Source: Okamejei kenojei (taxonomy: Eukaryota). Taken from it: DNA of 64,000 nt. The position numbers and the translations under genes are program-made. The DNA lies in contig CM069156.1 in assembly GCA_035221665.1 (NCBI GenBank), positions 39,928,001 to 39,992,000 on the forward strand. The letters run 5' to 3'. The notes beneath the pieces are model-generated. The model saw nothing but the letters and a program-made list of their open reading frames with translations. It was not told where the DNA came from and searched no databases. Positions 28,926-51,563 of this stretch are shown here, one piece after another. Position 1 is the stretch's first letter; each line of letters opens with the position of its first letter.

Positions 28926-30412
28926 TGCCCATTTAAGAGTACAAGAATGCATAACTTGTTTATTGTGTATTTGTAATATGGTTTACTGTGAATTTTACTT
29001 CTGAGTCACGTGAGTGACTATGAAGAAGCCCCGCCTGGCGCATGACCGGCATTACGTCGACGCTGTTGGTAGGCAAAGAGCTGCAGAGCGCAGCTCCACC
29101 AGCGGTAAGGAACAGGCCCACAGGTAAGTGCATTTAATTTACTTCCAGGGCAGTTCAAACTCCATTGCGCTGGCGTGCAGAGCCAGGAGGAGTTAAAAAT
29201 TAAAATGGAAAAAGTCCAGAAAAAATCACCGCGGGTTAAACGAGTGTCCCGGGGAGAAGAAAAACAGTCGGGACATGAGATTAGTGCAGAGCCGGTTCCG
29301 ATACCGGTGGCCGTGGAAATACCCGTTAGTGAACCTGTAATTGCTCCACAAACAGAAGCCACAGAGGAAATTCCTGTGCCAAAGAAAAGTAACAGGAAAT
29401 CCGTGAGGCCCGTGGTTTCTGATTACTCTGATAGTGAAAGTCCTCTGGATAGAAAAGCCATGTGGCTAAGAATGGAACACATGGAGAACGTTCTCCAGAC
29501 TATTATCAACCAAGGGTCCAAGAACCCAGAATATTCCCAAGCAGGCCCTGAGGGGTTTGCATATCAAGAATACGGCATTATGCCAAATTGGGAATTTGAA
29601 ACTCCAGAGCCTGGAATTGGGTTGGAGGAAGTCTCCTTTGACGAAGTCTCAGGAGTACCAGGGCTGCAAGAGACAGACCCTGAAGGTGGTGATGTTGGTC
29701 ATGAGTACCCACCACAATATAAAAAGATGAAACCAGGTGTGCCTGATGTGGCACAAAGCTTTGCTATATCTGAAGGAAGTGGTGAGGCCATGGAAGAAAA
29801 CCTGGCAGCCAACATTATTACTTGGTTTCTCACCAACTTCAAGAGGCTGTTATGGTTGAAACAGCAGAATTATATAAAACACCTGTGAATTGTGCTTCAC
29901 TAAGGGTACCTACGGTGAATCCGACTATTTGGACGCCCATGTCGTCAGTTATGCGGGCACAGGAAATACGTTTTCAAAGAGTCCTCAAACTTATTTCAGC
30001 TGGCATCACTGCTTTTGGGAAGCAAGTGGAAGGTTCTGCAATGACCAAAATTCAAAAAGATATGTTGGCTTTATTCTGCAATTCATTTTTTGAGCTCAAT
30101 TGTATGAGGAAAATTGCGATTCGGCCCATTTAGCACCCTAGATTTGCAGGCCTGTGCAGAACAAGTAATGTTCAAACTCCTGGTTATTTGTTCGGAGAAA
30201 ACCTGCCCAAGCAAATCAAAGATATGGATGAAGAGGCAAAATCTATTAGCCTCATGAGACCCTTCATCTTTGGCCAAAGAAGGTCTGGTGCAATAAGAAG
30301 GGGATTTGATTTTGGAGCTGGAACAAGCAGAGGCAGGAGTATGGAATTACCATCCAGCACAGCCTAATGTTCACCCATATGTGTGAGAAGGAGACCATCA
30401 CGTACGTTTGGA

Positions 30413-32333
30413 GAGGTACAAAAACTTTATTCTATCACAGTGGAATCTTTGGATGAACCTCCAATTGGTGGTAGATTACAATTGTTTTATGATGAATGGG
30501 ACTGTATAACATCTGACCGGTTTATATTAGATACTGTGTCTGGAGCTACAATAAAATTTGTAGAAGGTACTGATCCACCGGTACAGAATAAACCTAATCG
30601 TGTTTTGATGTTTTCTGCACTAGATAAAGCTGAAATAAAAGAAGAGGTAAACAATTTGTTTAAAAAAAGGAGTTATTGAGAAAACTGTTAAGCATCCACA
30701 GCAATTTGTATCAAATATTTTCCCAAGACCTAAAAAAGATGGTGGTTGTAGAATCATTCTGGACCTTACACACTTTAATACATTTGTCCAGTATAAACAT
30801 TTCAAGACGGATACCTTCAACACTGCAAGACAATTGTTATCAGCAGGTTGTTACATGGCTACTATAGAGTTCAAGGATGCATATTATTCAGTACCAATTC
30901 ATCGTCATTTTCGAAGGTACTTAAAGTTTAGTGGGATGGGACAGCTGTGGCAATATAAAGCATTACCTAATAGATTAAACTCAGCTCCTAGGCTATTCAC
31001 AAAGTTGTTGAAACCAGAACTTGCACAGCTAAGGGCACAAAAACACATTGTTATGGCTTATCTGGATGACATTTTAATTGTCAGTCAGCTGAAAAATCAG
31101 TTTCAGCAACTACAAACCTGTTTGAAAGGCTAGGGTTCCTGATCCATCCAACAAAATGTAAGCTACAGCCATCCCAAACAATTGACTATTTGGGGTTTGT
31201 GATTAATTCAGTTACCATGTTAGTGACTTTACCAATAGACAAAATTGTTGATATTACAAATGTATGTTGTTGCCTTATTCACAAACCTTATCCCTCCATC
31301 CGAGAAGTAGCAAAGATTATTGGTAAGTTAGTAGCAGCATTTCCTGCAGTGGAATTTGGTCCACTACATTACCAAAATCTCCATAGGACAAAAGCACAAG
31401 CATTAAAAAAGCGAGCAGGCCATTTTGATAGGCCCATGCAATTACCGAAGGAGGCTTTATCAGAGTTACAGTGGTGGATTGAGAATGTTCCACAAGCTGC
31501 TAAAAACATTTTAGTACAGCAGCCTATAGTGTTTTTACAAACTGATGCAAGTGCTCTCGGATGGGGGGGGCTACGGATAATTTCACCAGCTGTGGGGGCA
31601 GATGGACTGTCCCAGAGGAATTGTTTCTCCAAACATATGGTATCAATTATTTGGAGTTATTGGGGGCATTTTATGGATTAAAAGCTTATTGTTCTACTAT
31701 GACGGATTTGCATGTCCAATTACAAGTAGACAATACCACAGCTGTTGCATATATTAATCACATGGGTGGCGTAAGATCATTATCATGTGATTGTCTGGTT
31801 AATCAGATATATGGCATTGGGGTATTGATAATAATATTTGGCTTTCAGCAATTTGTCTACCAGGGAAAGATAATGTTGTGGCAGACAACAGATCAAGGAA
31901 ATTTAAAGACAATACGGAATGGATGTTAAATCCACAAGTTTTCAATAATATTGTCAATCGGTATGGATTACCAGACATTGATCCGTTTGCGTCTAGATTA
32001 AATCACCAATTGCCCAAATACGTGTCCTGGGAACCCGATCCAGGAGCAGTAGCGGTGGATGCATTCTTGCTACATTGGGGGAATATGTTATTTTATGCTT
32101 TTCCCCCATTTTGCCTGGTTAGGCAATGTCTTACGAAAATAGAGCAAGACTCTGCCATAGGTTTATTGGTGGTTCCAAATTGGCCTACACAGGCATGGTT
32201 CCCATTGATGCTTAAAATGATTATGGAACCATTTATGACGATTCCTAGCTGCAGTGATTTGTTGGTGCAACCAGTAGCAAAAGAAATTCATCCATTGCAT
32301 GATCATATGAATTTGTTAATCTGCAGGTTCTGA
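30413..32333 (+). pseudogene. DIRS-B pol (RT/RH/MT), multiply frameshifted
   Basis: ORFs 30383, 30834, 31190, 31561 and 31878 align collinearly with DIRS-A pol. Confidence 0.85.
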
Positions 32334-33130
32334 CCAGACCACCGCAAGGGCTTGGACTGTCGGATAGGACCTTGGATGTTATAGCTTCGGCTTGGCGAAA
32401 TAGCACTAAAAAACAATATATGTCACATATAAAGAAATGGGAAGTCTTTTGTAGACAGTCAAAGATATCTTATCATACTGCAAACACATCAAATGTATTG
32501 GAGTTCCTTGCTGGGTTGCATTTTGATCAGCACTTAAGCTATAGTGCCATTAATAGTGCTCGTAGTGCTTTATCGTCCAATTTAGGACAAATTTCTGACT
32601 GTAAATCAATCGGGTCTCATCCATTAAGATCCTGGTTTATGAAAGGGATTTTTAATAGAAATCCTCCCAAACCAAGATATACAGAAATTTGGGATGTCAG
32701 CATTGTGCTTACTTTGCTTAGGCAATGACTCCAATCACGTCAATGTCTTTGCAAAAATTAACATTTAAAGTGGTAATGTTAATGGCATTAGTGTCAGCAC
32801 AAAGAGTACAAACATTGCAAATGTTACGTTTAGATTGTATGCATGTGGCTTCAGATAACATTGTGTTTTATGTTTATGATTTAATCAAACAAAGCAGACC
32901 AGGGAAAACTGGAACTAAGGTAATGTTTAAAGCTTACTCTGTGGATCAAACACTGAGTGTAGTTAGACATTTGACTCAATATATTGAAGTAACCAAGAGT
33001 CTCCGGGGTAGTGAGACAGTGTTACTGATTACGCACAAAAAAACACATACAAAAATATCAGTACAAACCATTTCTAGATGGTTAAAACAGGTTTTGGATT
33101 TAGCAGGATTAGACACTGATACGATAAACC
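32327..33130 (+). pseudogene. DIRS-B tyrosine recombinase, truncated
   Basis: YSAINSARSALS, AQRVQTLQML, QTISRWLKQVL; in-frame stop at 32728; HxxR and catalytic Tyr absent. Confidence 0.85.
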
Positions 33131-33856
33131 TGTTCTCACGGTGCCAGGCTTTGGACACGCAGTGTTGGGTTCACTGTGATTGTTTGCTTTGCTTTTTACT
33201 ATCGATTTATATTATCGATTTATGTTATGACTTTATACCTTTATCACTTTATTGTAAACTTTCCCCTGGGGTAAAGGGGTTATCACTTTTGTTCTTTTAT
33301 AATTAAAAGATTTATTACATAACTGAAGCAATGTTTTAAATGATATATTATTTACTCACTACTGTGTTGACTGAGCCAGAGTGTCGTATGGAATGAATCT
33401 ACGACATAAAAAACACAGAGCTACAAAATCTTCACGTAGTCGCTCACGTGACTCCGAAGTAAAATAGTAAGATTAAACGAGAACTTACCAAGTTTGAAGT
33501 TTGATCGTTATTTTATGAGGAGTTACGATGAGGGATTATGTGCCCTCCACTCCCAACCCTCATAAAATAAATGATCATCTGGTAGTTCTAGTCTATGTTA
33601 GCCTTACTATCTTACTCCGGCTATTGGTTCTGTGTTTTTCATGCCGCTGCTTTGAAGTATGCCGATCATGCACCAGGCGGGACTTCTTCACATAATCCCT
33701 CATCGTTACTCCTCATAAAATAACGATCAAACTTCAAACTTGGTAAGTTCTCGTTTAATCTTACTATATGTGTCATAGCTGCTTTCTTGCATTTTTCCAG
33801 AAGTTTATAATTGAAAGTCATTTGTCGCAAAGTCATTTGGTATCAAGAGAAAGAAT

Positions 33857-34337
33857 CTCTCTCTCTCTCTAACTTTCTTCTCTCTCTCCTCTCTCTCTCC
33901 CCCGCTCTCTCTCTCTCTCCCTACCTACCTCTCAAATCTCTCCCACACTCCCTCTCCTCTTNNNNNNNNNNNNNNNNNNNNNNNNNNNNNNNNNNNNNNN
34001 NNNNNNNNNNNNNNNNNNNNNNNNNNNNNNNNNNNNNNNNNNNNNNNNNNNNNNNNNNNNNNNNNNNNNNNNNNNNNNNNNNNNNNNNNNNNNNNNNNNN
34101 NNNNNNNNNCCCCCTCTCTCCCTACCTCCCTCTCTATTTCCCCTCTTTCTCCCCCTCGCTCTCCCCCTCTCTCACCACTCTCGCTCTCCCCCACTCTCCC
34201 TCGCCCCCTCTCTCGCTCCCTCTCGCTCTCTCTCCACCCCTCTTTCTCTCTCTCCCTCCCCCCCTCTCCCTCCCCTCTCTCCCTCCCCCCTCTCTCTCCC
34301 TCCCCCCTTCTCCATCCCTCCCTCCCCCTCTCTCCAT

Positions 34338-34391
<54 letters not shown>

Positions 34392-34470
34392 CCTCTCTCT
34401 CCATCCACCCCTCTCCCTCCCCCTCTCTGCCTCGCCCCCTCAACCCCTCTCTCTATCCCTCCCCCATCTT
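33857..34470. repeat. CT-rich/(CT)n low-complexity tract containing an assembly gap (N 33962-34109)
   Basis: Directly visible. Confidence 0.95.
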
Positions 34471-35869
34471 CTTGGACCATGCTGACTATCTGGAGGTGTC
34501 TATTCGCACGAGGCTGAAGGGCGTGGATGAATAGAGAGAAGGATCGCACCCACGGTGTTGGTTAGGCATCGTATAGGAAGTGTTTTTGTGTTTGAGAAGT
34601 GAAGATGTTATTTGATCCAGAGCTTGACTCAGTGTTTTACTGAACCAGACTAACTGTGAGATTAGGGGCAAAATTACATAATGACGTGAAAGGTGCAGTG
34701 GAGGTTCAGTGGGGCAAGCTTAGAACTGAGAGTCAAGGCAGCCAAACCACTGTGGGTGGTTGAAGAGTGCAGAGATATGTAGTTGGCAAAATGTTATAGT
34801 CCTTTATAAAGGAGTCAATCTGCATTCGCCATTCCTCAGCCCACTAGCCCAACTGATCAAGAGCCTGTTGTAATGTTTGACAAAAATCTGACATTGACCG
34901 CAGTCTCTGGACCAGCACGGCAAGCGGCTGTGGCAGTACAGATTCCACCGATGCTTCTGCACTGAGGGATTCGGGTGCCTGGGGATTATGCAAGACAGCG
35001 ACGTGGAGAGAGTCACCCGTGTTTGTAGCAAGTAAAGGAACAGGCCCATTGTAGCTCTTCTCTGATGTGACCTGGAATGAAGTATTGACTGAATTCCTTG
35101 GATCACCGTTATGTCCATCGGTGACCGTGGAGTGTGCGAGTGAGGTGTCCGTGGATAGAGGCCACGAGCCCCTAATTCCCCCCCCCCCCCCCCCCGAGTC
35201 GTTTTGATATCCTAATATTTCCCTGCTGCTGATCCCAGTCCCCGCTCCTCCCGAATATTAGATATTTATCACAGCTGGAAACCTCGGCGATTTCTCTCTC
35301 CCGCAGCGAGCTCTTTCGCAATTATTATCAAATCAACTTTTTACTATCAATTCAAATATTGAAGTTCATCGCTTGAAGGAACAATGAACTGCAATTTATG
35401 AAAATATTTTTTAAAGACTACATTTCAGGTTCATCGTCTTCCGGAGATTGCAGTTTCTTAATGTTAAATCATTTTTGAAAATGCTCCCCCACGTCTCCCT
35501 CCTCCCTCATAGGGTCCCAGCGACCGCGACACCTGCACCGCTTCACAAACAAACAAAAACAGCATCGATTTGTATAACGGCAGCTAAATAAAGACCGCGC
35601 CAACACCGGCCGGGTCCCCGTGGGGAAATGACGAGAACGCAGCTGCATCAGCGCCGATCAAACACACGGGCTGGCGCCTCGGCTGCTCGGCCCATGAACC
35701 GTGGGCAACGTGGTGGTGTCTGGACGCAATGAGACTGATGGAGAGAGACATTTTCCAGTTCATCATTGAACAGAGTTATCGATTTCAAGTCCCAGCCCAT
35801 CAGGTTCCACATAAATGTAATCCTTTCCTTAACCTATGCTCTCTAACACCTTATTTTGCTACCCCGGAA

Positions 35870-36555
35870 TAAAGAATAAAACTCTGCACTCACAGTATCT
35901 ATCCGCCTCGTGATTTTATAACTCTCCATAGGGTCACCCCTGAGCCTTTTGTGTTCCAAGGAATTAGGCCCTAACCTGCTCAACCTCTCCCTGTAAATCA
36001 GCCACTCCCGTTCTTGCAACACCCTTGTGACTCTCGATGCACGTTTTCCAGCTTAATTAACATGTTTCCTACATTAGAGTGACCAAATCTGAACACGATA
36101 CACCTATTGCGGTCTCATCAACGTTTCTTGCAAATGTCAGATAATAACTTCTATACTTGACTGATGCAGGACAATGTTTCGAAAGCTTTCTTGACACCCA
36201 GTCTACATGTGACAACACTTTTATGGAACTATGGAACTGTACTCTTAATCCCTCTGCTCTACAACACTTCCTATTTACCGCTGACGCCACTTTTAAGGAA
36301 TTGTGCTTTGCAACCCCCTCCCCCCCCCCCACCCCCCCCCGGCCTTCATTGTGAAGCTCCCGCCCTTGATTGTCTTCCCAAAATGCAACGCATTGCAGTT
36401 ATCTACATTGCACTCCATTTGAAGTTCTTCAGAGCATTTGACAAGCTGATCAAGATCCTGTTTTAACCCCTGATAACCCCCTCAATGTCAGCATTACCCG
36501 CTATTTTGCGGCATCTGCAATCTGACTAATCATGCCTTGTACATTCCTATGCATA
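35870..36555 (-). mobile_element. Old, degraded CR1 fragment
   Basis: Recognisable decayed CR1 RT 3' sequence. Confidence 0.6.
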
Positions 36556-37089
36556 TTTGACAACTCCGACTGAGGCACACTAGACAACATAGAATGTATA
36601 GGACAAGCTTCTAACATACCATAAACTGCAATAGGTTAAGAAAGACTATTTAATCAATCAAGACGACCCAAGCTGCTTTGTTGTTATCGGGAAATGCTGG
36701 TGCCAGGACACACGGGAAGGCACCCGAACAGATTACCAAACGCTCCAGTCGAAATGTGGTCTCAAAGAGTATGTTACTGGATCACAGGGAGGCGCAGAGG
36801 TTAAGAAAACTCAAGAGCTCACGACTATGTCAGCTGAAGGCAGGAACGCTCATGGCGGCCGCGGTTAGATTTGGGACCCAATATTTGTGAATGAGGCGAA
36901 GCGGAGGTGTTGGTGCTTGTGGGGCTGCAGGAGGGAGGTTCCTGGGTTTAGGTCGGGGGTTCTGTGGTGGGCTGAGGACAATGGGTGCTCTGCTCCCGAT
37001 AATTAACTGCAGGAAACTTCACTCATGATGATCGCACTGTTCATCCATCGGTATAGAAAAGTAATGCAGGTCACGGGGAGAACATACAA

Positions 37090-38525
37090 TGCGCATGTTG
37101 TTCCATTGTTTAAAAAGGGTTCAAAGAATAAACCTAGCAATTATAGACCTGTTAGTTTGACGTCAGTGGTGGGCAAATTAATGGAAAGGATACTTAGAGA
37201 TAATATATATAAGCATCTGGAGAAACAGGGTCTGATCAGGAACAGTCAACATGGATTTGTGCCTGGAAGGTCATGTTTGACAAACCTTCTTGAATTTTTT
37301 GAAGTTACTAGGGAAATTGATGAGGGTAAAGCAGTGGATGTTGTCTATATGGATTTCAGTAAGGCCTTTGACAAGGTTCCCCAAGGTTAAGAAGGTTCAA
37401 TCTTTGGGTGTTAATGGCGGAGTAGCAAGATGGATTGAACAGTGGCTGAATGGGAGATGCCAGAGAGTAATGGTGGATGGCTGTTTGTCAGGTTGGAAGC
37501 TGGTGACCAGTGGGGTGCCTCAGGGATCTGTGTTGGGTCCACTGTTATTTGTCATGTACATCAATAATCTGGATGATGGGGTGGAAAATTGGAAAAGTAA
37601 GTATGCAGATGATACTAAGATAGGTGGTGTTGTGGATAATGAAGTCGATTTTCAAAGTCTACAGAAAGATTTGGGCCATTTGGAAGTGGGCTGAAAGATG
37701 GCAGATGGAGTTTAATGCTGATAAGTGTGAGGTGCTACACCTTGGCAGGACAAATCAAAATAGGACGTACATGGTAAATGGTAGGGAATTGAGGAATGCT
37801 GTGGAACAGAGGGATCTAGGAATAACTGTGCATAGTTCCCTGAAGGTGGAATCGCATGTAGATAGGGTGGTAAAGAAAGCTTTTGGTGTGCTGGCCTTTA
37901 TAAATCAGAGCATTGAATATAGGAGTGGGGAAGTAATGTTAAAATTGTACAAGGCATTGGTGAGACCAATTCTGGAGTATGGTGTACAATTTTGGTCGCC
38001 TAATTATGGGAAGGATGTCAACAAAATAGAGAGAGTACAGAGGAGATTTACTAGAATGTTGCCTGGGTTCCAGCAACTAAGTTACAGAGAAAGGTTGAAC
38101 AAGTTAGGTCTGTATTCTTTGGAGCGCAGAAGGTTAAGGGGGGACTTGATTGTGGTCTTTAAAATGATGAAAGGAATAGACAGAGTTGACGTGGATAAGC
38201 TTTTCCCATTGAGGGTAGGGAAGATTCAAACAAGAGGGCATGACATGAGAATAAAGGGACAGAAGTTTAGCGGTAACATGAGGGGGAACTTCTTTACTCA
38301 GAGAGTGGTGGCTGTGTGGAATGAGCTTCCAGCAGAAGTGGTGGAGGCAGGATCGATTTTAACATTTAAAAGTAAAGTGGATAGGTATATGGACAGAAAG
38401 GGAATGGAGGGGTATGGTCTGAGTGCAGGTAGATGGGACTAGCAGAAAATAAATGTTCGGCACGGACTTGAAGGGCCGAGAGGGCCTGTTTCCGTGCTGT
38501 AATTGTTATGTGGTTATATGGTTAT
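37090..38525 (+). mobile_element. Young CR1 LINE, 5'-truncated RT region with 3' tail
   Basis: NYRPVSLTS, QHGF, DFSKAFDKVP, GVPQGSVLGP, YADDTK; 272-aa ORF; (tatatggt)n tail. Confidence 0.93.
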
Positions 38526-38574
38526 ACAAACTCAGTACAGACAGAACCCGTAGTCGGGATCGAACCCAGGTCTC

Positions 38575-39100
38575 CGGCTGATCATCCAACTCAGTATCCT
38601 GTACCTGCCTTGTCTCCATAGCCACTGATCCCTTTAGCCACAAGGGCCACATCTAACTCCCTCTTAAATATAGCCAATGAACTGGCCTCAACTACCTTCT
38701 GTGGCAGAGAATTCCAGAGACTCACCACTCTCAGTGTGAAAAATGTTTTCCCACATCTCGGTCTTAAAGGAATTCCCCCTTATCCTTAGACTGTGACCCC
38801 TTGTTCTGGACCTCCCCAACATTGGGAACAATCTTCCTGCATCTAGCTTATCCAACCCCTTAAGAATTTTGTAAGTTTCTATAAGATCCCCCCTCAGTCT
38901 TCTAAATTCTAGTGAGTACAAGCCAAGTCTATCCAGTCTTTCCTCATATGAAAGTCCTGACAGCACAGGAATCAGTCTGGTGAACCTTCTCTGTACCCCC
39001 TCTATGGCAAGAATGTCTTTCCTCAGATTTGGAGACCAAAACTGTACGTAATACACCAGGTGTGGTCTCACCAAAACCCTGTACAACTGCAGTAGAACCT
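38575..39100 (-). mobile_element. CR1 LINE 3' fragment
   Basis: LYRVLVRPHL, LEFRRLRGDL. Confidence 0.9.
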
Positions 39101-39434
39101 CAGAAGCAAAGGAAGCTCCCATATACCTCAGAGAACGAAAGGCCAGGGAGGCGCCGAAAGAAGCCGTGGTGAGTGGCCGCAAAAGGATTGAGAATGAATG
39201 ACATTGGGAGCAACTTCCCAGCTTCCGTAGATCATAGAACCGATTCCACAGATGTCAGGAAGTAAAGTTACATCATGTAAGGAAGGATTGCGAGTGGCTG
39301 AGTGTGTGAGAGAGAGTGGGGGGGAGATGGAGAGAGGGGTAGACAAGGGACTTGTTGTTTCAATCCCTGTAATAAGTTGGCACTCTTGTTATTTTGCAGT
39401 GGGATTGGAGTGGTGAAAGGTAGGGTAGGTACGT

Positions 39435-39506
39435 CATCGGGGTCATCAGGTGGGCACCCTCCTTCTTTGATGTTTCATTGATAAGCCCACAACATCTCCA
39501 GAGGGC
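39435..39506 (-). ncRNA. Candidate non-circularly permuted hammerhead ribozyme in Hero 3' UTR (second copy ~43685-43755)
   Basis: Minus strand reads GAUGUU|GUGGGC ... GAAACAUC ... GCCCAC-CUGAUGA. Stem I has 6 perfect bp, stem III has 5 bp, stem II is weak. Confidence 0.55.
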
Positions 39507-42216
39507 TCAACGGTGATACCTGGCTTCCCAGTTACACCCCCCTCAATTCCATACCCTCCTGTATTCATCTTGCAGCCCAATTGCTGTCTCTCCTTTTGAT
39601 CCAGATCCAATTGCTGCTTTTTTCCGCAGAATTTGATAATGACTTAATTGCTTGTTGGAGGCAGCGACCCCTCACCCCCATTTTCTTTAATAGCCTGATC
39701 ATAGATGTAGCAACAAATCCCCTGCATCCCACTTCGACAGGGAAAATCTTGGTCTTCCAGCCATTCTGGGAAGCTTCAGTTGCCAGTTCAGTTGCCAGTT
39801 CAGAGTACTTGGTATGCCAACTTGGCTGTTGTGGACCACAGGACCATGTCTGGTCGGAGTGTTGTAACCACAATGTCTGGGGGAAACACAAACCTTTTTC
39901 CTAAGTCCACTTCCATTTTCCAATCCCGAGCAGGCAGCAGAATGCTTGCACCCATTGATGTTATCTGGTGCTCTGGAGGTTGGCCTGCTGGTACAAATGT
40001 TGTGAAGTGGACATTTCCTGCCGATGTTGGTGGGGAAGCATTTGTGATCGTTCGCCTCTGTTCAAGGATTGATGACAGCTGTCTGAGAACTTGGTTATGC
40101 CGCCAAGTGTAACGCCCTTGGCCGAGGCTCATAGTGCATCCTGTTAAAATGTGCCTTAGTGATCCAGGTGCTTGGCAAAGAGAGCAAGTGGGGTCTTCTC
40201 CGAACCACTGCTTCAGGTTCTGCGGTGATGGTACAACATTATAAGTGGCTCTGATGACAAAACTTAGTCGAGATCCTTCCATTTGCCAGATTTCACGCCA
40301 GCTGAGTTTCCTCTTTTCCAGGCTCTCCCAGTTAGTCCATTGGCCCTGCTTAGCCATTGAGACGGCCTTGGCGTGTCGCTCTGCCTCCTCCCGTCTTCTC
40401 ACCTCCTCCACCACGAGCCGTCTTTTCTGCACTGATGTTGCCTTGTGCCATTGAGGAGCTTTTGGGACAAGCCTGAGCCCGGCTCTCCCGTGTTGGACTT
40501 GGCCAACCATATCCCGGAAATGAAGAGCAGACATAGCACTCTGAACGGCTTCAGATGGGGTCCACTTCCTCCCCGTTGCCACACGGGGGGCTGCTGTTTG
40601 AATAACAGTATCTTCAGATTCAGTGAGGGTCATGACCAACCTTGCTTTAGTGCATTTGAACTCTTCCATAAGTCCTGTAATGGGTAATTCCAATTTGCCA
40701 CTCCCATACAGTCCGACAGCACTTAAGCATCGTGGAAGTCCAAGCCACTGTTTCACATGTGTGCTGATCATTCTTTCCAGCTTTTTCACTTTGTTGATGG
40801 GGATTTCATACATAGTTAAAGGCCACATGATTCTTGGTAGTATGCCAAATTGAAAGCACCACAGCTTGAGTTTTCCTAGTAGCAAGGTCTTGTTGATGCG
40901 AGCCATGTGCATGATGGTATCATTTTTCAGTTGTTCAAATTGCTCGGTGTCCTTGAGCTTTGCATCATACCATCGGCCCAAACTCTTCACTGGCATTTCT
41001 GAAACAGTTGGAACAGGTATTCCGTCAATATGAAATCTTTGATCCCTAACTTGACCTTTGACAATGGAGATGCTTCTGCACTTGCTGGGTTTAATCTTCA
41101 TCCTTGCCCATGTGATGTTTTGATGAAGTTTTTCCAGAGTCTCTTGGTGCAGGGGATAGTTGTTGTTAGTGTTGTTATATCGTCCATATAGGCTCGTACC
41201 GGTGGCAATCGCTGACCACATTGTAACCGTTTTCCTCCCACAACCCATTTTGATGCTCTGATAATGAGCTCCATTGCCATAGTGAAGGTCAATGGGGAGA
41301 TGGTGCACCCCGCCATGATGCCTACTTCCAGTGGTTGCCGCGCTGTGCTAAATTCTGATGTTGTGAGACAAAATTGCAGATCCTGGAAGTAGTTTTTTAT
41401 CAGATTTGTTACTATTGTCGGCACCTGAAAGAATTCAAAAGCAATCCACAGTAGCGAATGAGGAACTGATCCATAGGCGCTGGCCAGATCGAGGAACAAG
41501 ACATGCAGATTCTTTAGTTCTTTCTTAGCAGCCTGGATTTGATGCCATATGATGCTGGTGTGTTCAAGGCATCCCGAGAAGCCTGCTATGCCAACCTTTT
41601 GGATTGACGTATCAATGAAATGGTTTTGTTTCAGATACTTCGTAAGTCTTTTTGCCACCACACTGAAAATGATCTTGCCCTCTATGTTAAGAAGGTTTAT
41701 TTGCCGAAACTGTTCGATGGTGGAAGAATGTTTTTCTTTTGGGATCAGGACTCCCCCTGCTCTTCGCCAGGCTTTGGGGATAACTTCCTTTTCCCACGCA
41801 ACCCTCATGTTCCTCCAGAGGAATTTCAGAATATCTGGGGCATTCTTGTAGACACAATATGGAACACCATTAGGGCCTGGTGCAGAGGCCGTTCTTGCCT
41901 TCCTCACTACTTATATTACCTCACTCAGCTTGGGAGGGCTGATGTCAAATTGATGTTGTGGGGGTGAGATTGGTGGGATGTCAGCGGGGACAAAAATCGG
42001 TTCATCTTTTAACTCATCAGTGTGGGTGGTTCTGATGTGTCCTTCCACCTGCTTTTTTGATGCTTTCAGGGATCCGCTTTTTTCTTTTGTGAAAATGCCT
42101 TTCACAAACTTAAAGGGATATTCGTAGAAGTCTGTTCTTGCTTTTTCCTTCTTTTTGCATTGTTTCCTTAAATTCTCCGCTCTGCACAGCTTCGAGAGCC
42201 TCTGTTTTAGGTCGTT

Positions 42217-42660
42217 TTAGAAACATAGACATAGAAATTAGGTGCAGGAGCAGGCCATTCGGCCCTTCGAGCCTGCACCGCCATTCAATATGATCATGGC
42301 TGATCATCCAACTCAATATCCTGTAACTGCCTTCTCTCCATACCCTCTGATCCCTTCAGCCACAAGGGCCACATCCAACTCCCTCTTAAATATGGCCAAA
42401 GAACTGGCCTCAACTACCTTCTGTGGCAGAGAATTCCACAGATTCACCACTCTCTGTGTGAAAAACGATTTTCTCATCTCAGTCCTAAAAGACTTCCCCC
42501 TTATCCTTAAACTGTGACCCCTTGTCCTGGACTTCCCCAACATCGGGAACAATCTTCCTGCATCTAGCCTGTCCAACCCCTTAAGAATTTTGTAAGTCTC
42601 TATGAGATCACCCCATCTTCTAAATTCCAGCGAGTACAAGCCGAGTCTATCCAGTCTTTT
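42217..42660 (-). mobile_element. CR1 3' fragment inserted in the Hero element
   Basis: Near-identical to 2931-3380. Confidence 0.9.
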
Positions 42661-43597
42661 GAAGGAGATTGATGCCCTCCCTTTCTTCTGCTGTTGCTTT
42701 TTTTCCACACCTTCCTCAGACCTCTTCTTTCTTTAACAAGTCATTGGATTTCCTGGAGACGACGGGACTTGGGGGGGAGGAGGCCTATCTTTCCTGCTGA
42801 GTTGTTCCTTTTCACCAAATTTCTCCTTTCCACAGCTGAAGACTAGATCACCCATCTTCTCCAACTTCTTTTCTGCTGATCCCTTGATTCCACTTAAGAT
42901 TAAGCTCACATCTGCATTGATGATTTCCCACTCCTAGCTGTTAGGCTTTGGCCGTTTCACCAACGGCTTACATCCTTGCATGTTCTCCACTTTACGATGT
43001 GCCTGGTTGCGTCTTGGACTGTTGCCTGAAACTTCTGCCATATCCCTTAGGGTGCTGATGCTCTGTGGACTGTGGATTTCTTCCTGCCGCTGAGTTTCAT
43101 CCGACTGATTTGACCTTCCTCTTAACAGAATCTGGTCAATGCGGGGCCCTGGGTTGGGGATTTTCAAGCATTTTTTCCGTCCCTGATGAATTTTGAGACC
43201 ACGAGTTGATGTTACTTTAGTCCAGCCACACCAACAGGTCTGAAGAACATGTCCAGCTGCTCGTTTTTCAAGAGTTTTGCCACTTACTTGATTCAATGTC
43301 GTGTCCGTTCCAAGGTTTGTTACTGGGTGGTCAGTCGATGAGTCATCTTGCTGTGACTCTCGCAGACTCTGGGGGTATTTTTCTCTTTGAACTTTTTGTA
43401 GCCAAGTAAGGGTGGCTCTTGTGCCCTAACAAGGTGACGGAGCCAGCTGTTATGGGTAGCTAGCCCATAACAGCCCCGTTGGGGTCTATTTCCTCCTGTC
43501 AGCTGTCTCTCCAAGCTGTCGCACGGTCTTTCCCATGTCGTCAGCTGCACTTTCACAACTGTCACTGGTTTTTCCTCCAGAAGGTCAGTAGAGCTAA

Positions 43598-44342
43598 TGG
43601 GACTTGTTTCAATCCCTGTAATAAGTCGGCACTCTTGTTATATGCAGTGGGATCGGAGTGGTGAAAGGTAGGGTAGGTACGTCATAGGGGTCATCAGGTG
43701 GGCACCCTCCTTCTTTGACTTTTCATTGATAAGCCCACAACTTCTCCAGAGGGCCCAACGGTGATACCTGGCATCCCAGTTACACCCCCCTCAATTCCAT
43801 ACCCTCCTGTATTCATCTTGCAGCCCAATTGCTGTCTCTCCTTTTGATCCAGATCCAATTACTGCTTTTTTCTGCAGAATTTGATAATGATTTGATTGCT
43901 TGTTGGAGGCAGCGACCCCTCACCCCTATTTTCTTTAATAGCCTGGTCATAGATGTAGCAACAAATCCCCTGCATCCCACTTCGACAGGGAAAATCTTGG
44001 TCTTCCAGCCATTCTGGGAAGCTTCAGTTGCCAGTTCAGAGTACTTGTTTTTTTTTCTCTCATAAGCTTCTTCAACACCATCTTCCCATGGAACTGTCAA
44101 TTCCACAACATATGCCAACTTGGCTGTTGTGGACCACAGGACCATGTCTGGCTGGAGTGTTGTACCCACAATGTCTGGAGGAAACACAAGCCTTTTTTCT
44201 AAGTCCACTTCCATTTTCCAATCCCAAGCAGGCTGCAAAATGCTTGCATCCATTGATGTCATCTGGTGCTCTGGAGGTTGGCCTGCTGGTACAAATGTTG
44301 TGAAGTGGACATATCCTGCCGATGTTGGTGGGGAAGCATTTT
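43598..44342 (-). mobile_element. Second Hero 3' end (RLE C-terminus + 3' UTR), head-to-tail upstream of the long copy
   Basis: ORF 43813..44421 PDMVLWS..VELTVPWE..K..KY..PVEVGCRG; highly similar to 39348-40040. Confidence 0.88.
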
Positions 44343-44399
44343 TGACAAGTACAAATGTTATACAGAGTTTATACGGGGTACTGGTGGGAACGCAATTGT

Positions 44400-47100
44400 A
44401 ATGTCCAGGTGGATAAGTCACCTGGACTGGATGGATTGCACCTGGATTCAGAAGGAGGTGGCTTCAGAGATTGTCAAAGCATTAGTTGTGATATTTCAAG
44501 AATCATTAGAGTTGGGGGTGGTTTTTGAAGATTGGAATATCACGAATATCACCCCGCTGAACAAGAAGGGAGCAAACTAGAAGAGCACAAATTAGAGGCT
44601 GGTTAGCCTGACTTCGGTGGTTGGTAAGATTTTAGAGACAATTATAAAGGATGAGGTCATACAGTACTTAGAAGTTCATGATAAAATAGGCCGAAGTCAG
44701 CATGGTTTTGTGAAGGGACGATCTTGACACACAGAAGGGAAGCTGTAGAAATGGTGTACCTAGATTTTCAGAAGGCTTTCGATAAGGTGCCGCACGTTAG
44801 TCTGTTAGGGAAGATGAGATCCCATTGTATTACAGGATATACTAGCATGGATATCGGGTTGGCAGGATGGGAGAAGGCAAGGAGTTGCAATAAAAGGTGC
44901 TTTTTGAAGTTGGCTGCCAGTGACTGGTGGAGTTCCGCGAGGGTCGGTGCTGGAGCCGCTTCTCGTTGTATATTAATGATTTCGATAAGGGGATTGAGGG
45001 CTTTGTGGCCAAATATGCAGATGATGCAAAGATAGGTGGAGGGGCAGGCATTGTAGAGGAAGCAATGACGCTGCAGAAGGACTTGGACAGGTTAGGAGAG
45101 TGGGCAGAGATGTAGCAGAGGAAATTCAGGAAAGCAAAGTGCGGAATCATGCATTTTGGTGTGAGAATAAAGGCATAGATTATTTTGTAAATGGAGAGAG
45201 AATGCAGAAATCGGAGGTGCAAAGGAACTTGTGAGCGCTGCTGCAGGGCTCCCACAAAGTTACTTTGCAAATCGAATCGGTAGTAAGGAGGGAGGACCTC
45301 TTTGAAACTTACAGAATAATGAAAGGCATAGATAGAGTGGATGTGGAAAGAATGTTTCCACAGGTGGGAGAGTCTAGGACCAGAGGCCATAGCCGTAAAA
45401 TTAAAGGGGGCTCTTTTAGTGAGGAGGAACTTATTTCGTCATTTGTGGAACTCCTTGCTGTGGAGTCCATGTCCAGTGGGCATTTTTAAGGCAGATGTTG
45501 ACAAATTTTGATTAGAATGGGTGTCAAGGGTTATGGGGAAAAGGCAGGAAAATTGGATTAGTAGGCAGAAATCAGACTTGATTAAATGGCGGATTAGACT
45601 CGATGGGCCGAATGCCCTAATTTTATTCCGATAATTAATATCCTTAAGCCCACGGGTGTGTAACATGAAGATATACCAAGGTCTCTGCACCTGTGATTGG
45701 AGGATAACTACTGTCATCCCACTTTTTAAGAAAGGAGGGAGAGAGAAAATAGGACATTATAGACCAGTTAGCCTGGCACCAGTGGTGGGGAAGATGCTGG
45801 AGTCAATTAATAAAGATGTAATAGCGGCGCATTTGGATAGCAGTAACAGAATCAGTCCAAGTCACCATGGATTTATGAAGGGGAAATCTTGCTTGGGTAA
45901 TTTTCTGGAATTTTTTAAGGATGTATCAAGAAATATGGATAAGGGAGAGCCAGTGGATGTAGTGTATTTAGACTTTCGGAAAGCCTTTGACAGGGTCCTA
46001 CACAGGAGATTAGTGGGCACAATTAGAACATATGGTTTTGGGGGTAGGGTATTGACATGGAAAGAAAATTGGTTGGCAGACAGGAAACAAAGAGTATGAA
46101 TTAACGTGTCCCTTTCAGAATGACACGCAGTGACTGGTGGGGTGCCGCAAGGCTCGGAGCTGGGACCGCAGCTATTTGCAATATATATAAATGAGTTAGA
46201 TGAAGGAATTAAAAGTAACAATTAGCAAATTTGCAGATGTCGCAAAGCTGGGTGGCAGTGTGAACTGTGAAGAGGATGCTATGGGGGATGCAGGGTGACT
46301 TGGATAGGTCGGGTGAGTGGGCAGATGCAGTATAATGTGGATAAATGTGAGTTTATCCATTTTGGTGGCAAGAACAAGAAGGCAGATTACCATCTGAATG
46401 AAGTCAGAATGTTGCAGGATAAGGGGAAGTGCAAAGAGACCTGGGTGTCCTTGTACACCAGTCACTGAAAGTAAGCATGCAGGCACATGAGGCAGTGAAG
46501 AACGCTAATGGCATGTTGGCCCACATAACGAGAGGATTTGAGTATAGAAGCAAAGAGGTCCTTCTGCAGTTGTACAGGGCCCCTGTGAGACCACCCCTGG
46601 AGTATTGCGCGCAGTTTTGGTCTCCTAATTTGAGGAAGGCCATTCTTCCTATTGAGTGCAGCGTAGGTTCACGAGGTTAATTCCCGGGATGGCGGGACTG
46701 TCATATGATGAAAGAATGGGACAGCTGGGCTTGTATTTACTGGAGTTTAGAAGGATGAGAGAGGATCTTATAAAAACATATACAATTATTAAGGGATTGG
46801 ACAAGCTGGATGCAGAGAACATGTTCCCGATGTTGGGGGAGTCGAGAACCAGGGGCCACATTTTAAGAATATGGGGTAGGCCACTTAGAACGGAGATGAG
46901 GAAAAATGTGTTGCGAATTTGTGGAATTCTCTGCCTCAAAAGGCAGTGGAGGCCGATTCACTGGATACATTGAAAAGAGATTTATATAGGGCTCTTAGGA
47001 TTAGCGGAATCAAGGGATATGGGGAGAAGGCAGGAACGGGATACTGAATATGGATGATCAGCCTTCAATGATCACATTGAATGGCGGTGCTGGCTCGAAT
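44400..47100 (+). mobile_element. Two tandem degraded CR1 RT fragments (44400-45620, 45690-47100)
   Basis: YLDFQKAFDKVPH, KYADDAKIGG, YRPVSL, LYRAPVRP. Confidence 0.85.
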
Positions 47101-47139
47101 TGCTTGGTTTATACAATACATATTTTAGTCAGGTTTCTT

Positions 47140-47390
47140 TAGAGACACGTCCCATCGGCCCAGCGAGTCCGCACCGACCAGCGACCCCCGCACACTTACA
47201 CTATCCTACACAAACTGGGGACAATTTACATTTTAACCAAGCCAATTAACCTACAAATCTCTATGCTTTTGGAGTGTGGGGGGAAACAAAAGATCGCGAG
47301 GAAAACCTACGCAGCTTTTGGGGAGAACGTACTAATTCCGTACAGACAAGTATCCGTAGTCAGGATCGAACCCAGGTCTTTGGCAGTAGC
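47140..47390 (-). mobile_element. V-SINE/HE1-like tRNA-derived SINE (further copy ~49380-49605)
   Basis: Reverse complement contains a ggttcgatcc B box and the V-domain-like cccacactccaaa..gttaattggc. Confidence 0.7.
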
Positions 47391-47423
47391 TCAAACCCCT
47401 GGATTGAATAGATTTTAGATATA

Positions 47424-49005
47424 CAGTGGCTTTGAAAAGTTTTCATACCCCTTAAACTTTTCCACATTTTGTCACGTTACAACCACAAACGTAAATGTAT
47501 TTAATTGGGATTTTATGTGATAGACCAACATAAAGTGGTGCATAATTGTGAAGTGGAAGGAAAATGATACATGGTTTCCAAATTTTATTACAAATAAAAA
47601 ACTGAAAAGTGTGGCGTGCAAAAGTATTCTGCCCCCCGAGTCAATACTTTGTAGAACCACCTATCGCTGCAATTACAGTTGCAAGTCTTTTGGGGGTATG
47701 TCTCTACCAGCTTTGCACATCTAGAGACTGAAATTTGTGCCCATTCTTCTTTGCAAAATAGCTCAAGCTCAGTCAGATTGGATGGAGAGCGTCTGTGAAC
47801 AGCAATTTTCAAGTCTTGCCAGAGATTCTCAATTGGATTTAGGTCTGGACTTTGACTGGGCCATTCTAACACATTAATATGCTTTGATCTAAACCATTCC
47901 ATTGTAGCTCTGGCTGTATGTTTAGGGTCGTTGTCCTGCTGGAAGGTGAACCTCCGCCCCAGTCTCAGGTCTTTTGCAGACTCTAACAGGTTTTCTTCCA
48001 AGATTGCCCTGTATTTGGCTCCATCCATCTTCCCATCAACTCTGAGCAGCTTCCTTGTCCTTGCTGAAGAAAAGCATCCCCACAGTGAGGATGGTGTGTT
48101 CAGGGTGATGTGCATTGTTAGTTTTCTGCCACACTTAGCATTTTGCATTTAGGCCAAAAACTTCATGTTGGTCTCATCAGACCAGAGCACCTTCCTCCAC
48201 ATGTTTGCTGTGTCCCCCATATGGCTTGTGGCAAACAGCAAACGGGACTTCTTATGGCTTTGTTTCAACAATGGCTTTCTTCTTGCCACTCTTCGATAAA
48301 GGCCCGATTTGTGGAGTGTACAACTAATAATTGTCCTGTGGACAGATTCTCCCACCTGAGCTGTGGATATCTGCAGCTCCTCCAGAGTTACCATGGGCCT
48401 CTTGGTTGCTTCTCTGATCAATGCTCTCCATGCCCGGCCTGTCAATTTATGTGGACGGCCATGTCTTGGTAGATTTGCAGTTGTGCCATACTCTTTCCAT
48501 TTTCGGATGATGGATTGAACAGTGCTCCGTGAGATGTTCAAAGCTTGGGATATTTTATAACCTAACCCTGCTTTAAACTTCTCCACAACTTTATCCCTGA
48601 CCTGTCTGGTATGTTCCTTGGGATTCATGATGCTGTTTGTTCACTAATGTTCTCTAACAAACCTCTGAGGCCTTCACAGAACAATTGTATTTATAGTGAG
48701 ATTAGATTACACACATGTGGACTCTATTTACTAATTAGGTGACTTCTGAAGACAATTGGTTGGATTGGATTTTATTTAGGGGTATCAGAGTAAAGGGGGC
48801 TGAATACCTTTGCACACCACACTTTTCAGTTTTTTATTTGTAAAAAAATTGAAAACCATGTATAATTGTCCTTCCACTTCACAATTATGCACCACTTTGT
48901 GTTGATCTATCACATAAAATCCCAATAAAATATATTTACGTTTGTGGTTGTAACATGAAAAAATGTGGAAAATTTCAAGAGGTATGAAACTTTTGCAAGC
49001 CACTG
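47424..49005 (-). mobile_element. Tc1-like DNA transposon with ~200-bp TIRs, TA TSD and disrupted DD34E-type transposase (48628-~47640)
   Basis: TA|CAGTGG...CCACTG|TA; HTH region ISRSTVQSIIRKW, GRP, WSDET, FQQDNDPKH, WPSQSPDLNPIENLW. Confidence 0.95.
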
Positions 49006-51563
49006 TATTGTTGGACGTGAAGGGAATTGATGCTATGGGTTTCGTGCGGGAGGGTAGCACTCGGGTAAATGATCAGCCACCTTCACGTTGAACAAGGACG
49101 AGCAGAGGCGCGAGGAACCCCGTACCCTAATAGTATTTAATGCTCAAATGCATAGGGGAAGGAACATTGATATTCTCACTTTTGATACCTTGATAGATCC
49201 ATTGACGTATTAACGCGGAGAAAATATACAGTAATCAATAATACAATCAATTAGTAAACAGTTAAAGAAGGTAACCACAAAAGTAGAAAACCGAAGCCCG
49301 TTGTGCAACCAAAATCAGAGAATATCACAGTTGCTGCGGTAGTGGTTTGTGTTGTGCGCTTTTTAGTTTAAAGGTACAGTATGGAAACAGGCTGACCAAA
49401 GATCACTCACACACATGTTCCATGTTATCCTACCTTTGCATTATCTGAAGACCAGCATTTTGGGGGGGATGTGGGAGGAAACTGGAACACCGAGAGAAAA
49501 CTAGTGCGGACACAGGGAGAAACAATTCCTCACAGACAGCACCCGAGATCAGAAACCTGGGTCTCTGGCGCTGTGAGGCAGCAGCTCTACCCGCTGCTCC
49601 ACTGCGGCAGTGTGTCAAAGAGCCTGGTGATTGCTTGGAAGAGTAATGAACTATCATACCCATGTGTTTATTTCTGATGTAACACCTCACGCTGAATGCC
49701 CATGCGCGAGTGACGAAGGGAATGGATTCTCAGGTTGGTGGCGCAGACCCAACCCGTTGGTCAGGATGGGGCCAAGTTGTCCAGGAGCGCGGGGGAGTTG
49801 ACCCCTCACCCACGTGGTTGCATCCCAACACACTGCTGATTCCTGGATCATCTTCGGCCTAACCCAAAACAAATCTCTCGACATATCACCCGAGACCTTT
49901 GGCCCTGGGATCGGATAACATTAGTCATAGAGTCACACAGCACAGTAAACAGGTGCCTCGACCTAGCTGTGCCGACCACGATGCCCCTTCTCCATTCGTT
50001 CCACCTGCCTGCGTTGGGCCCAAATCTATCCAAAACTTTCCTACCCAAGTACCTGTACAAATATATTTGAAATTCTACTCTCGTTCTGCCTCAACTATTT
50101 CCTCTAACAGCACGTTCCATAAACCCACCAATCTCTGTGTGAAATATTATTTGCACATCTTGATTTAATGAATCCGGTTTAATTTATGGCCAATGGTCAG
50201 CTCTGGATGTTGATGGCGGTGGATTCTGCAGTGCTGTGTCATTGGATATCACAGCTTGGTGGACAGACTCTTTGTTGAAAGAGGCGATTAATGGCACATG
50301 AACTGTAAATGGATGTTCAGCGATACTGCCCCACACTCCATTATAAGGGAAGAATCGGATACAATTGTGACTTTCGAAATATATTTGAAGAGCTATGTGG
50401 ATTGAAAGGATTTAGAAAGATGAGGGCTAAATGCATGCACTGGGACTCGCGTTGACAAGGTGGGCCAAAGGGCAAGGGTTTCGCTGCTCTACGACTTGAT
50501 ATGGAAAGTACAATGAATACAACTGCCATGTGATCCCAGAATGGGCCGGTGGGATGGGAATGGTGAAAGTGCTGTAGATGTTGGGCTCTGCTCGCTATTT
50601 TGAGGAACTCCTGCAGTGATGTACTGGGGCTGTGTGGATTAGCTTCCTATAAAACATTCAACAGGCCGATGCCTGCATTGTCAACTACAGTAAGAAATTT
50701 GAGCTACGTGGTTGCATTCTCTGGAACGCTGGAAGTTGCGGGGACACCTAATAGACATATATAAAGTTAAGGGGCACAAATAGGATCAACAATCATAACC
50801 TATAACATAGAAACATAGAAAATAGATGCAGGAGGAGGCCATTCAGCCCCTCGAGCCAGAACCGCCATTCATTGTGATCATGGCTGATCTTCCCCAATCA
50901 ATAACCCGTGCCTGCCTTCTCCCCATGTCCCTTGATTCCACTAGTCCCTAGAGCTCTATCTAACTCTCTCTTAAATCCATCCAGTGAATTGGCCTCCACT
51001 GCCCTCTGTGGCAGGGAATTCCATAAATTCACAACTCTCTGGGTGAAAACGTTTTTTCTTATCTCAGTCTTAAATTACCTCCCCTTTATTTTAAGACTGT
51101 GGCCCCAGGTTCTGGACTCTCCCAACATTGGGAACATTTTTCCTGCATCTAGCTTGTTCAGTCCTTTTATAATTTGATTTGTTTCTATAAGATCTCCCCT
51201 CATTCTTCTAAACTCCAGTGAATACAAGCTTAGTCTTGTTAATCTTTCCTCATATGACAGTCCCGCTATCCCAGGGATCAATCTCGTGAACCTACGATGC
51301 ACTGCCTCAATCACAAGGATGTCCTTCCTCAAATTAGGAGACCAAAACTGTACACTCCAGATGTGGTATCACCAGAGCCCTATACAACTGCAGAATAACC
51401 TCTTTACTCCTACACTGAAATCCTCTTGTTATGAAGGCCAACATTCCATTAGCTTTCTTCACTGCCTGCTGTACCTGTAAGCCAACTTTCAGTGACCGGT
51501 GTACAAGGACACCCAGGTCTCGCTGTACCTCCCCCTTACCTAACCTAACCCCATTGAGATAAT

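Follow-up and report, generated by a model that had tools for sequence, protein, structure and literature searches.

A hammerhead-like RNA domain with a rearranged strand order in the 3′ UTR of a HERO-like retrotransposon

Just downstream of the stop codon of a HERO-like, restriction-like-endonuclease (RLE) non-LTR retrotransposon of Okamejei kenojei lies a 128-nt RNA domain that carries every catalytic nucleotide and all three helices of the hammerhead self-cleaving ribozyme, joined in a strand order that was found described nowhere in the literature searched. A covariance model finds the domain in 72 of 80 loci encoding distant relatives of the element's endonuclease domain, with many compensatory base-pair changes, and it is this comparative evidence, rather than the motif match itself, that supports the assignment. 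Self-cleavage of the RNA is inferred by analogy with the hammerhead. The window analyzed is a 64,000-nt stretch of contig CM069156.1 (assembly GCA_035221665.1, positions 39,928,001 to 39,992,000), and all coordinates below are positions within it.

An initial annotation, made from the sequence alone, had described a hammerhead core on the minus strand at 39506-39435, and that observation is confirmed, since the letters read exactly as described. GUGGGC (39490-39485) pairs with GCCCAC (39455-39450) directly 5′ of CUGAUGA (39449-39443), GAUGU (39496-39492) pairs with ACAUC (39473-39469) after GAA (39476-39474), CCCUC (39505-39501) pairs with GAGGG (39461-39457), and U39491 sits at position 17. 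Two corrections apply. The feature is larger than annotated, spanning 39555-39428, and the perfect stem III is private to this copy. About 90% of the family's depth in three sequencing runs reads C at plus-strand position 39471, giving a U.G wobble in the family majority, so that the window's perfect stem comes from a CpG-type change in this copy.

The motif match alone could not settle the matter. A scan for CUGANGA, a 6-bp Watson-Crick stem I, GAAA and a 5-bp stem III, in any block order and with no stem II demanded, hits once in the real window, at this site, and 0.0025 times per Markov-shuffled 64-kb window (1 of 400). That is rare for one window, but such hits would be expected many times over a large scan. 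A search with Rfam 15 models returned no hammerhead hit at E<=10 within window positions 30000-50000, with no other family matching this region either, and no family at all at E<=1 in five strong loci. Minimum-free-energy folding showed that the 3′ UTR as a whole folds no better than shuffles (z = +0.17), although nested folding cannot see a pseudoknotted structure and the result is therefore uninformative.

The element lies on the minus strand and is accompanied by a second, 5′-truncated copy (copy B, at about 44330-43588), the element bearing the annotated site being copy A. Its architecture includes a reverse transcriptase followed by a CCHC motif and a C-terminal PD-(D/E)xK-like endonuclease in one reading direction, as in RLE-type elements of the R2 superfamily. 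The reverse transcriptase (41907-41098) matches Pfam RVT_1 at E=1.3e-18, and the endonuclease domain aligns with 27 homologues, in which D, E and K columns are invariant and a C..C..H..C motif lies upstream. The HERO assignment is provisional, resting on the spread of homologues (teleosts, sturgeon, amphioxus and a scallop) and on microsatellite-like flanks, both of which agree with what is written about HERO (PMC4640811). No relatives were found among viral contigs. The larger features of the locus, all on the minus strand, are as follows.

42934-43296: N-terminal zinc-finger region of copy A.
39565-41907: reverse transcriptase, CCHC and restriction-like endonuclease coding region of copy A, frameshifted near 39800-39891, with the stop codon at 39567-39565.
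39428-39555: the whole ribozyme-like domain of copy A (128 nt), starting 9 nt after the stop codon; the covariance model hits 39431-39552 at 32.2 bits (E=1.4e-5).
39339-39427: 3′ tail of the element after the domain; the element ends at about 39339 (..UCUAC), followed by a CT-rich flank.
43676-43803: the same domain in copy B, with an intact core but with 2 of 5 pairs broken in stem III (GAAGU/AAGUC); 19.5 bits, E=0.028.
43583-43594: head-to-tail junction, where the 3′ end of copy B (..GCUCUAC) abuts what appears to be the 5′ end of copy A (UGACC..).

The 3′ end of the element was placed by the point up to which the two copies align and by assembled contigs (Logan) from public runs of several organisms, which hold near-identical sequence at very high summed depth. 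Read depth collapses below about 39352, and loose contig ends start at 39348. A minority subset of the loose contig ends showed no excess at the predicted cleavage site.

To test for conservation and covariation, the endonuclease alignment was used to fetch 80 loci from metagenome contigs of unknown organisms, encoding relatives at 40-72% amino-acid identity. In most of their 3′ UTRs a CUGANGA lies 70-130 nt after the stop codon, where N varies and the neighboring sequences differ but stay complementary. Reading these relatives showed that the strand before GAAA does not pair with the bases after CUGANGA, but with a strand upstream of the cleavage-site block. In copy A the domain reads as follows, 5′ to 3′ on the minus strand, every helix having been checked base by base.

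39555-39550: outer 5′ strand of the closing helix, GGUAUG, pairing with CGUACC at 39433-39428 (six of six positions pair in both window copies).
39542-39539: inner 5′ strand of the closing helix, GGGG, pairing with CCCC at 39442-39439.
39538-39512: extra hairpin P0 (GGUG..CUGG gaag CCAG..CACC), folding at -10.6 kcal/mol and flush against both the inner closing helix and G10.1.
39511-39507: stem II 5′ strand, GUUGA (G10.1 = 39511), pairing with 39481-39477.
39506: linker, G.
39505-39501: P4 5′ strand, CCCUC; P4 ties the far ends of stems I and II together and connects to stem III.
39500-39497: 5′ side of a kink-turn-like internal loop, UGGA, with GA next to stem III.
39496-39492: stem III 5′ strand, GAUGU (U16.1 = 39492).
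39491-39490: predicted cleavage site, between U17 (39491) and G1.1 (39490).
39490-39485: stem I 5′ strand, GUGGGC.
39484-39482: linker, UUA.
39481-39477: stem II 3′ strand, UCAAU (U11.1 = 39477).
39476-39474: G12 A13 A14.
39473-39469: stem III 3′ strand, ACAUC (A15.1 = 39473); the family majority has G at 39471.
39468-39462: 3′ side of the kink-turn-like loop, AAAGAAG (3-nt bulge, GA, then 2 nt).
39461-39457: P4 3′ strand, GAGGG.
39456: linker, U.
39455-39450: stem I 3′ strand, GCCCAC.
39449-39443: C3 U4 G5 A6 U7 G8 A9 (CUGAUGA).
39442-39428: 3′ strand of the closing helix, with CCCC directly after A9, then the loop GAUGA, then CGUACC.

The usual A9-G10.1 backbone link is thus replaced by a linker-free four-way junction made of the core, the closing helix, P0 and stem II. 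Linkers are 0 nt at A9/closing helix, closing helix/P0 and P0/G10.1 in 67-69 of 69 rows, and the step from 11.1 to G12 is direct.

Conservation of the core is close to complete. In an alignment of 42 sequences made by MAFFT alone, the invariant columns are exactly U16.1, G12 A13 A14 A15.1 and C3 U4 G5 A6 G8 A9, with A15.1-U16.1 present in 42 of 42 rows. In a 74-row alignment based on the covariance model, position 17 is U in 32, C in 21, A in 21 and G in none, as the H17 rule of the hammerhead requires, while N7 is U in 32, C in 17, A in 14 and G in 6. U16.1 and G10.1 are each present in 73 of 74 rows, position 12 is G in 63 and A in 5, and positions 13 and 14 are each A in 68. The 10.1-11.1 pair is G-C in 57 rows and G.U in 8, the window having G.U. 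The core is fully canonical in 54 of 67 complete rows; the others carry one or two core changes, as expected of decaying copies, several of them CpG-type, such as CG to CA at C11.1-G12. The motif sequences fall into 43 clusters at 85% identity.

The helices, by contrast, vary freely while remaining paired. On the MAFFT alignment, which was fitted to no structure, stems I, II, III and P4 give 93.8% paired cells against 35-46% when partners are slid, 221 cells with changes on both sides against 27-49, and a covariation score of 0.704 against 0.147 or less. The covariance model was then built from 18 seeds with only the nested helices in its structure. Besides the 72 loci it finds both window copies; all hits are on the sense strand, every locus hit but one weak second hit (in one locus, L011, E=0.14) lies at or just after the ORF end, and E-values go down to 1e-29. 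On the resulting 74 rows, 38 pairs in seven helices are 93.0% paired against 35-42% in slid controls, 36 of 38 pairs show double changes, and no shuffle in 500 reaches the observed values. Stems I and II were not part of the model's structure and both still hold, with double changes in 6 of 6 stem I pairs. Each of stems I, II and III has 4-6 pairs with compensatory changes and is 92-97% paired. P0 extends to 8 bp, including three pairs outside the model, is 92% paired, and shows double changes in 8 of 8 pairs.

Column-wise pair counting of the closing helix on a MAFFT alignment was uninformative, because the helix was out of register between subfamilies, and duplex energies and the model-based alignment were used in its place. 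The 12 nt after A9 bind the sequence's own upstream region at -16.6 kcal/mol on average, against -9.0 (sd 2.9) for upstream regions of other sequences. In most loci this is a perfect 10-12 bp helix beginning at +1 after A9, and 11 of 11 of its model pairs show double changes. As for the loop between P4 and stem III, judged on sequence pattern alone, the pattern fits that of a kink-turn (helix, 3-nt bulge, tandem G.A/A.G pairs, then a non-canonical helix): GA lies next to stem III in 49 of 70 relatives and a 7-nt opposite strand occurs in 53 of 70, mostly reading NNNGANN; a subgroup has a 7-nt/1-nt bulge instead.

The interpretation offered in the initial annotation is therefore partly supported. 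A hammerhead core in a non-circularly permuted, pseudoknotted strand order in the 3′ UTR of an RLE-type element is supported, and stems I and III, the CCCUC/GAGGG extension and the GUU site were all read correctly, being conserved and covarying in relatives. The statement that non-circular hammerhead permutations have been reported is also right (PMC10085705). The caveat that stem II is weak and lacks a G10.1-C11.1 pair is not supported, since stem II is a good 5-bp helix whose 5′ strand lies upstream of the cleavage-site block. Nor is the strand order simply A-C-B (cleavage-site block, GAAA block, CUGAUGA block), because the CUGAUGA block is itself split between A9 and G10.1. The suggestion that cleavage might define the ends of the transcript does not fit this copy, where the site lies 152 nt inside the element's 3′ end; as genomic copies keep the tail, the cut cannot define the 3′ end.

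The closest known systems are the type-SGC (HRIMA-1) hammerheads of Eckert, Friedrich, Weinberg and Weinberg 2023 (PMC10085705), natural ribozymes from viroid-like metatranscriptome RNAs that cleave in vitro. That work divided the hammerhead into blocks S (cleavage site), G (GAAA) and C (CUGANGA with the stem II 5′ strand), which were assumed to be uninterruptible. The present domain shares their core consensus, their pseudoknotted core, their cyclic order (cleavage-site block, GAAA block, then stem I 3′ strand with CUGANGA), a short linker from stem I to stem II and a helix tying the other sides of these stems together. That linker is roughly 3 nt in type SGC, mostly 4-5 nt beyond a 6-bp stem I in the relatives, and 3 nt in the window; P4, the tying helix here, is flanked by 1-nt linkers. 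In type SGC, however, the stem II 5′ strand follows A9 directly, and the RNA ends lie before stem III and after the tying helix. Here those two ends are joined through the kink-turn-like loop and the chain is opened instead inside block C, so the domain fails the letter of the type-SGC definition as well as the backbone continuity of the hammerhead class, while having each feature of core and helices. It is accordingly filed as a hammerhead variant and not as a new class. Some natural hammerheads tolerate an extra nucleotide between A9 and G10.1, which makes a junction there plausible.

Canonical hammerheads of types I, II and III share C3-A9, G12-A14, H17, A15.1-U16.1, G10.1-C11.1 and three helices around the core, but form an unknotted three-way junction with the ends in one stem. 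The hammerheads of Penelope-like elements and retrozymes (PMC4209133, PMC7229834, PMC11167929) are likewise carried by retroelements occurring as tandem or partly tandem copies, with an unsettled role in mobility; those are ordinary type I motifs, often minimal ones, in pseudo-LTRs of elements with GIY-YIG endonucleases or in non-autonomous elements, whereas this one is permuted and sits in an autonomous RLE-type element. HDV-like ribozymes at the 5′ end of R2 and other non-LTR elements are built into the same superfamily and process co-transcripts, but belong to a different ribozyme class and a different place. The discontinuous hammerhead of rodent Clec2 3′ UTRs (Martick et al. 2008, cited in PMC3088659) also lies in a vertebrate 3′ UTR with an unusual strand arrangement, yet is an ordinary topology split by a long insertion and is not reordered. 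Literature searches, in which most subscription journals were not covered, found no description of a hammerhead in the 3′ UTRs of HERO or other RLE elements, nor of one with the A9-G10.1 backbone interrupted.

The best explanation, held with reasonable though not full confidence, is that this is a genuine hammerhead-type ribozyme domain with a new strand connectivity, forming the first 128 nt of the 3′ UTR. [quoted passage not shown] Cleavage between U39491 and G39490 would leave a 2′,3′-cyclic phosphate on the ORF-bearing fragment and a 5′-OH on the 152-nt 3′ fragment. The two products would stay clamped by about 20 or more base pairs of the closing helix, stem II, P4 and stem III, so the cut should be readily reversible. 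The least certain inference concerns function: in head-to-tail arrays a ribozyme in the upstream copy would trim read-through transcripts ahead of the downstream copy, much as the HDV-like ribozyme does for R2, and the folded domain may double as the 3′ UTR structure that the reverse transcriptase binds.

Several facts weigh against this explanation. A cut at this site would separate the ORF from the tail used for target-primed reverse transcription, and most genomic copies keep that tail, so that a selective benefit of cleavage is not evident. Contigs from a run that may be RNA bridge the site, so uncut molecules exist. In Penelope-like elements, hammerhead mutants did not affect insertion in vitro, and cleavage needed protein (PMC11167929).

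The main rival, considered unlikely but possible, is that the domain adopts a hammerhead-like fold without being catalytic in vivo, serving as the structured, pseudoknotted 3′ UTR recognized by the reverse transcriptase to start target-primed reverse transcription, with the core bases retained for folding and protein contact. In many families the domain ends only about 40 nt before the element's 3′ end, which is where R2-type proteins bind a pseudoknotted RNA (PMC12222951); cleavage would cut the template, genomic copies retain sequence on both sides of the site, and the break at A9/G10.1 has no tested precedent. Yet every base needed for hammerhead chemistry is kept across 43 lineages while the helices vary freely, including the absence of G at position 17 and a free N7. 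A protein-binding scaffold would not be expected to match the full catalytic consensus, and the related type-SGC topology does cleave. The two roles do not exclude each other.

A plain type-SGC hammerhead, with a weak stem II formed by the bases after CUGAUGA (ccccGAU with AUCaau), has in its favor only that the three blocks occur in that order. It is very unlikely, being contradicted by the covariation: the bases after A9 pair with a strand upstream of P0, the strand before GAAA pairs with GUUGA at 39511-39507, and the GAU/AUC pairing would be offset from the core by 4 and 3 unpaired bases. Chance co-occurrence of CUGAUGA, GAAA and two short complementary stretches, multiplied within a high-copy repeat, could be entertained given the expected number of matches over a large scan, the unremarkable folding energy and the absence of an Rfam match, but it is refuted by the 72 of 80 distant relatives that carry the domain at the same place with compensatory changes in all seven helices. 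A GUGAAAG..CUGACGA stretch in the presumed 5′ UTR of copy A (about 43555-43535) is not matched by the covariance model.

Until 2023 the hammerhead was thought to exist only as three circular permutations, and the non-circular ones reported since come from viroid-like environmental RNAs. The present domain shows a further connectivity, in which the CUGANGA block is split by a four-way junction, and it occurs in the nuclear genomes of animals, within an autonomous retrotransposon family present at very high copy number in at least one vertebrate genome. It offers a natural test of how much backbone rewiring the hammerhead active site tolerates, adds a third case of ribozymes built into retroelements beside the HDV-like ribozymes of R2 and the hammerheads of Penelope-like elements, and shows why model-based annotation with Rfam misses such RNAs.

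Head-to-tail arrays are common among the relatives. Of 41 loci with enough downstream sequence, 16 have a same-strand N-terminal zinc-finger region after the motif, beginning 323-417 nt downstream in 14 of them and 581 and 703 nt in the other two, with no opposite-strand hits, and the window shows the same arrangement. In the shark-like genome, however, most copies have heterogeneous 3′ flanks, so arrays are not the rule there. It is conceivable, though unlikely on present evidence, that ribozyme and arrays belong together: cleavage at two successive ribozymes in an array transcript would give a unit-length RNA whose ends re-form the ribozyme (closing helix, II, P4, III) and would be ligated into a circle, and reverse transcription around that circle would make new arrays. 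That would be a retrozyme-like, rolling-circle life cycle in an autonomous RLE-type LINE, with the reordered topology selected because it keeps the cleavage products clamped together. Finally, the stop codon lies inside the closing helix or P0 in 43 of 70 loci, and within 30 nt upstream in 16 more, such that terminating ribosomes must then unfold the junction and translation and ribozyme folding may be coupled.

The window contains a junction at 43583-43594 on the minus strand, at which the 3' end of one copy of the element is followed directly by the 5' region of another copy on the same strand, although the upstream copy in this case is 5'-truncated. Similar head-to-tail arrays were seen among the metagenome loci that encode relatives of the element's endonuclease domain (L001-L080), where they occurred in 16 of the 41 loci with enough downstream sequence (L004, L005, L012, L013, L022, L026, L028, L029, L030, L037, L038, L054, L058, L064, L068 and L074). 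In most of these loci, the zinc-finger region starts about 330 nt after the predicted ribozyme domain. This arrangement could arise by template jumping or by rolling-circle copying.

The ends of the ORFs also lie close to the predicted ribozyme. In 43 of 70 relatives, the stop codon is found inside the domain, in either the closing helix or the P0 hairpin, and in 16 more it lies within 30 nt upstream. In the window, the stop codon (39565-39567) ends 9 nt before the domain. Considering these positions, translation termination and folding of the predicted ribozyme may be coupled.

On the other side of the domain, loci such as L028, L037, L045, L053 and L067 possess a conserved small hairpin of the form GCAGU..ACUGUAU, located after the closing helix and 15-40 nt after A9, the last base of the CUGANGA core, and followed by a short tail. 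Related copies (L044, L053, L055 and L060) diverge about 37 nt after CUGACGA, and the predicted ribozyme is therefore almost at the 3' terminus in these families, while the window's family has a longer tail of 89 nt. The 3' flank (window 39300-39338, minus strand) of copy A, the window copy with the intact domain, is CT-rich on the element's strand, and contigs of one sequencing run continue into (GA)n-like sequence at the element's end. This is in keeping with the microsatellite targeting reported for some HERO families.

Several of the deviations found in the core or stems of the domain are CpG-type changes. Examples include G12 to A, which occurs in the C11.1-G12 dinucleotide in five loci (L044, L055, L060, L068 and L080), and G to A at 39471 in the window copy. 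Such changes would be expected for methylated, decaying genomic copies. The family itself is very abundant and is shared among related species, as summed word depth over the element (window 39250-40250, sequencing runs X1 and X5) is about 2e4 to 3e5 in DNA-like runs of two organisms, and near-identical sequence occurs in runs labelled as eight organisms.

Copy A also appears to have been interrupted by another kind of LINE, since a fragment encoding the C-terminal part of a different, CR1/L2-like LINE protein sits between its zinc-finger and RT regions, and similar LINE fragments lie elsewhere in the window:
42242-42720, the apparent insertion in copy A, with its ORF at 42313-42708 on the minus strand
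37025-38442, plus strand, a similar LINE fragment
38688-39182, minus strand, a similar LINE fragment
44266-46099, plus strand, a similar LINE fragment

Finally, the presumed 5' UTR of copy A (about 43535-43555, minus strand) contains GUGAAAG followed 6 nt later by CUGACGA, but this stretch was not matched by the covariance model of the ribozyme domain, nor was any Rfam family found there.
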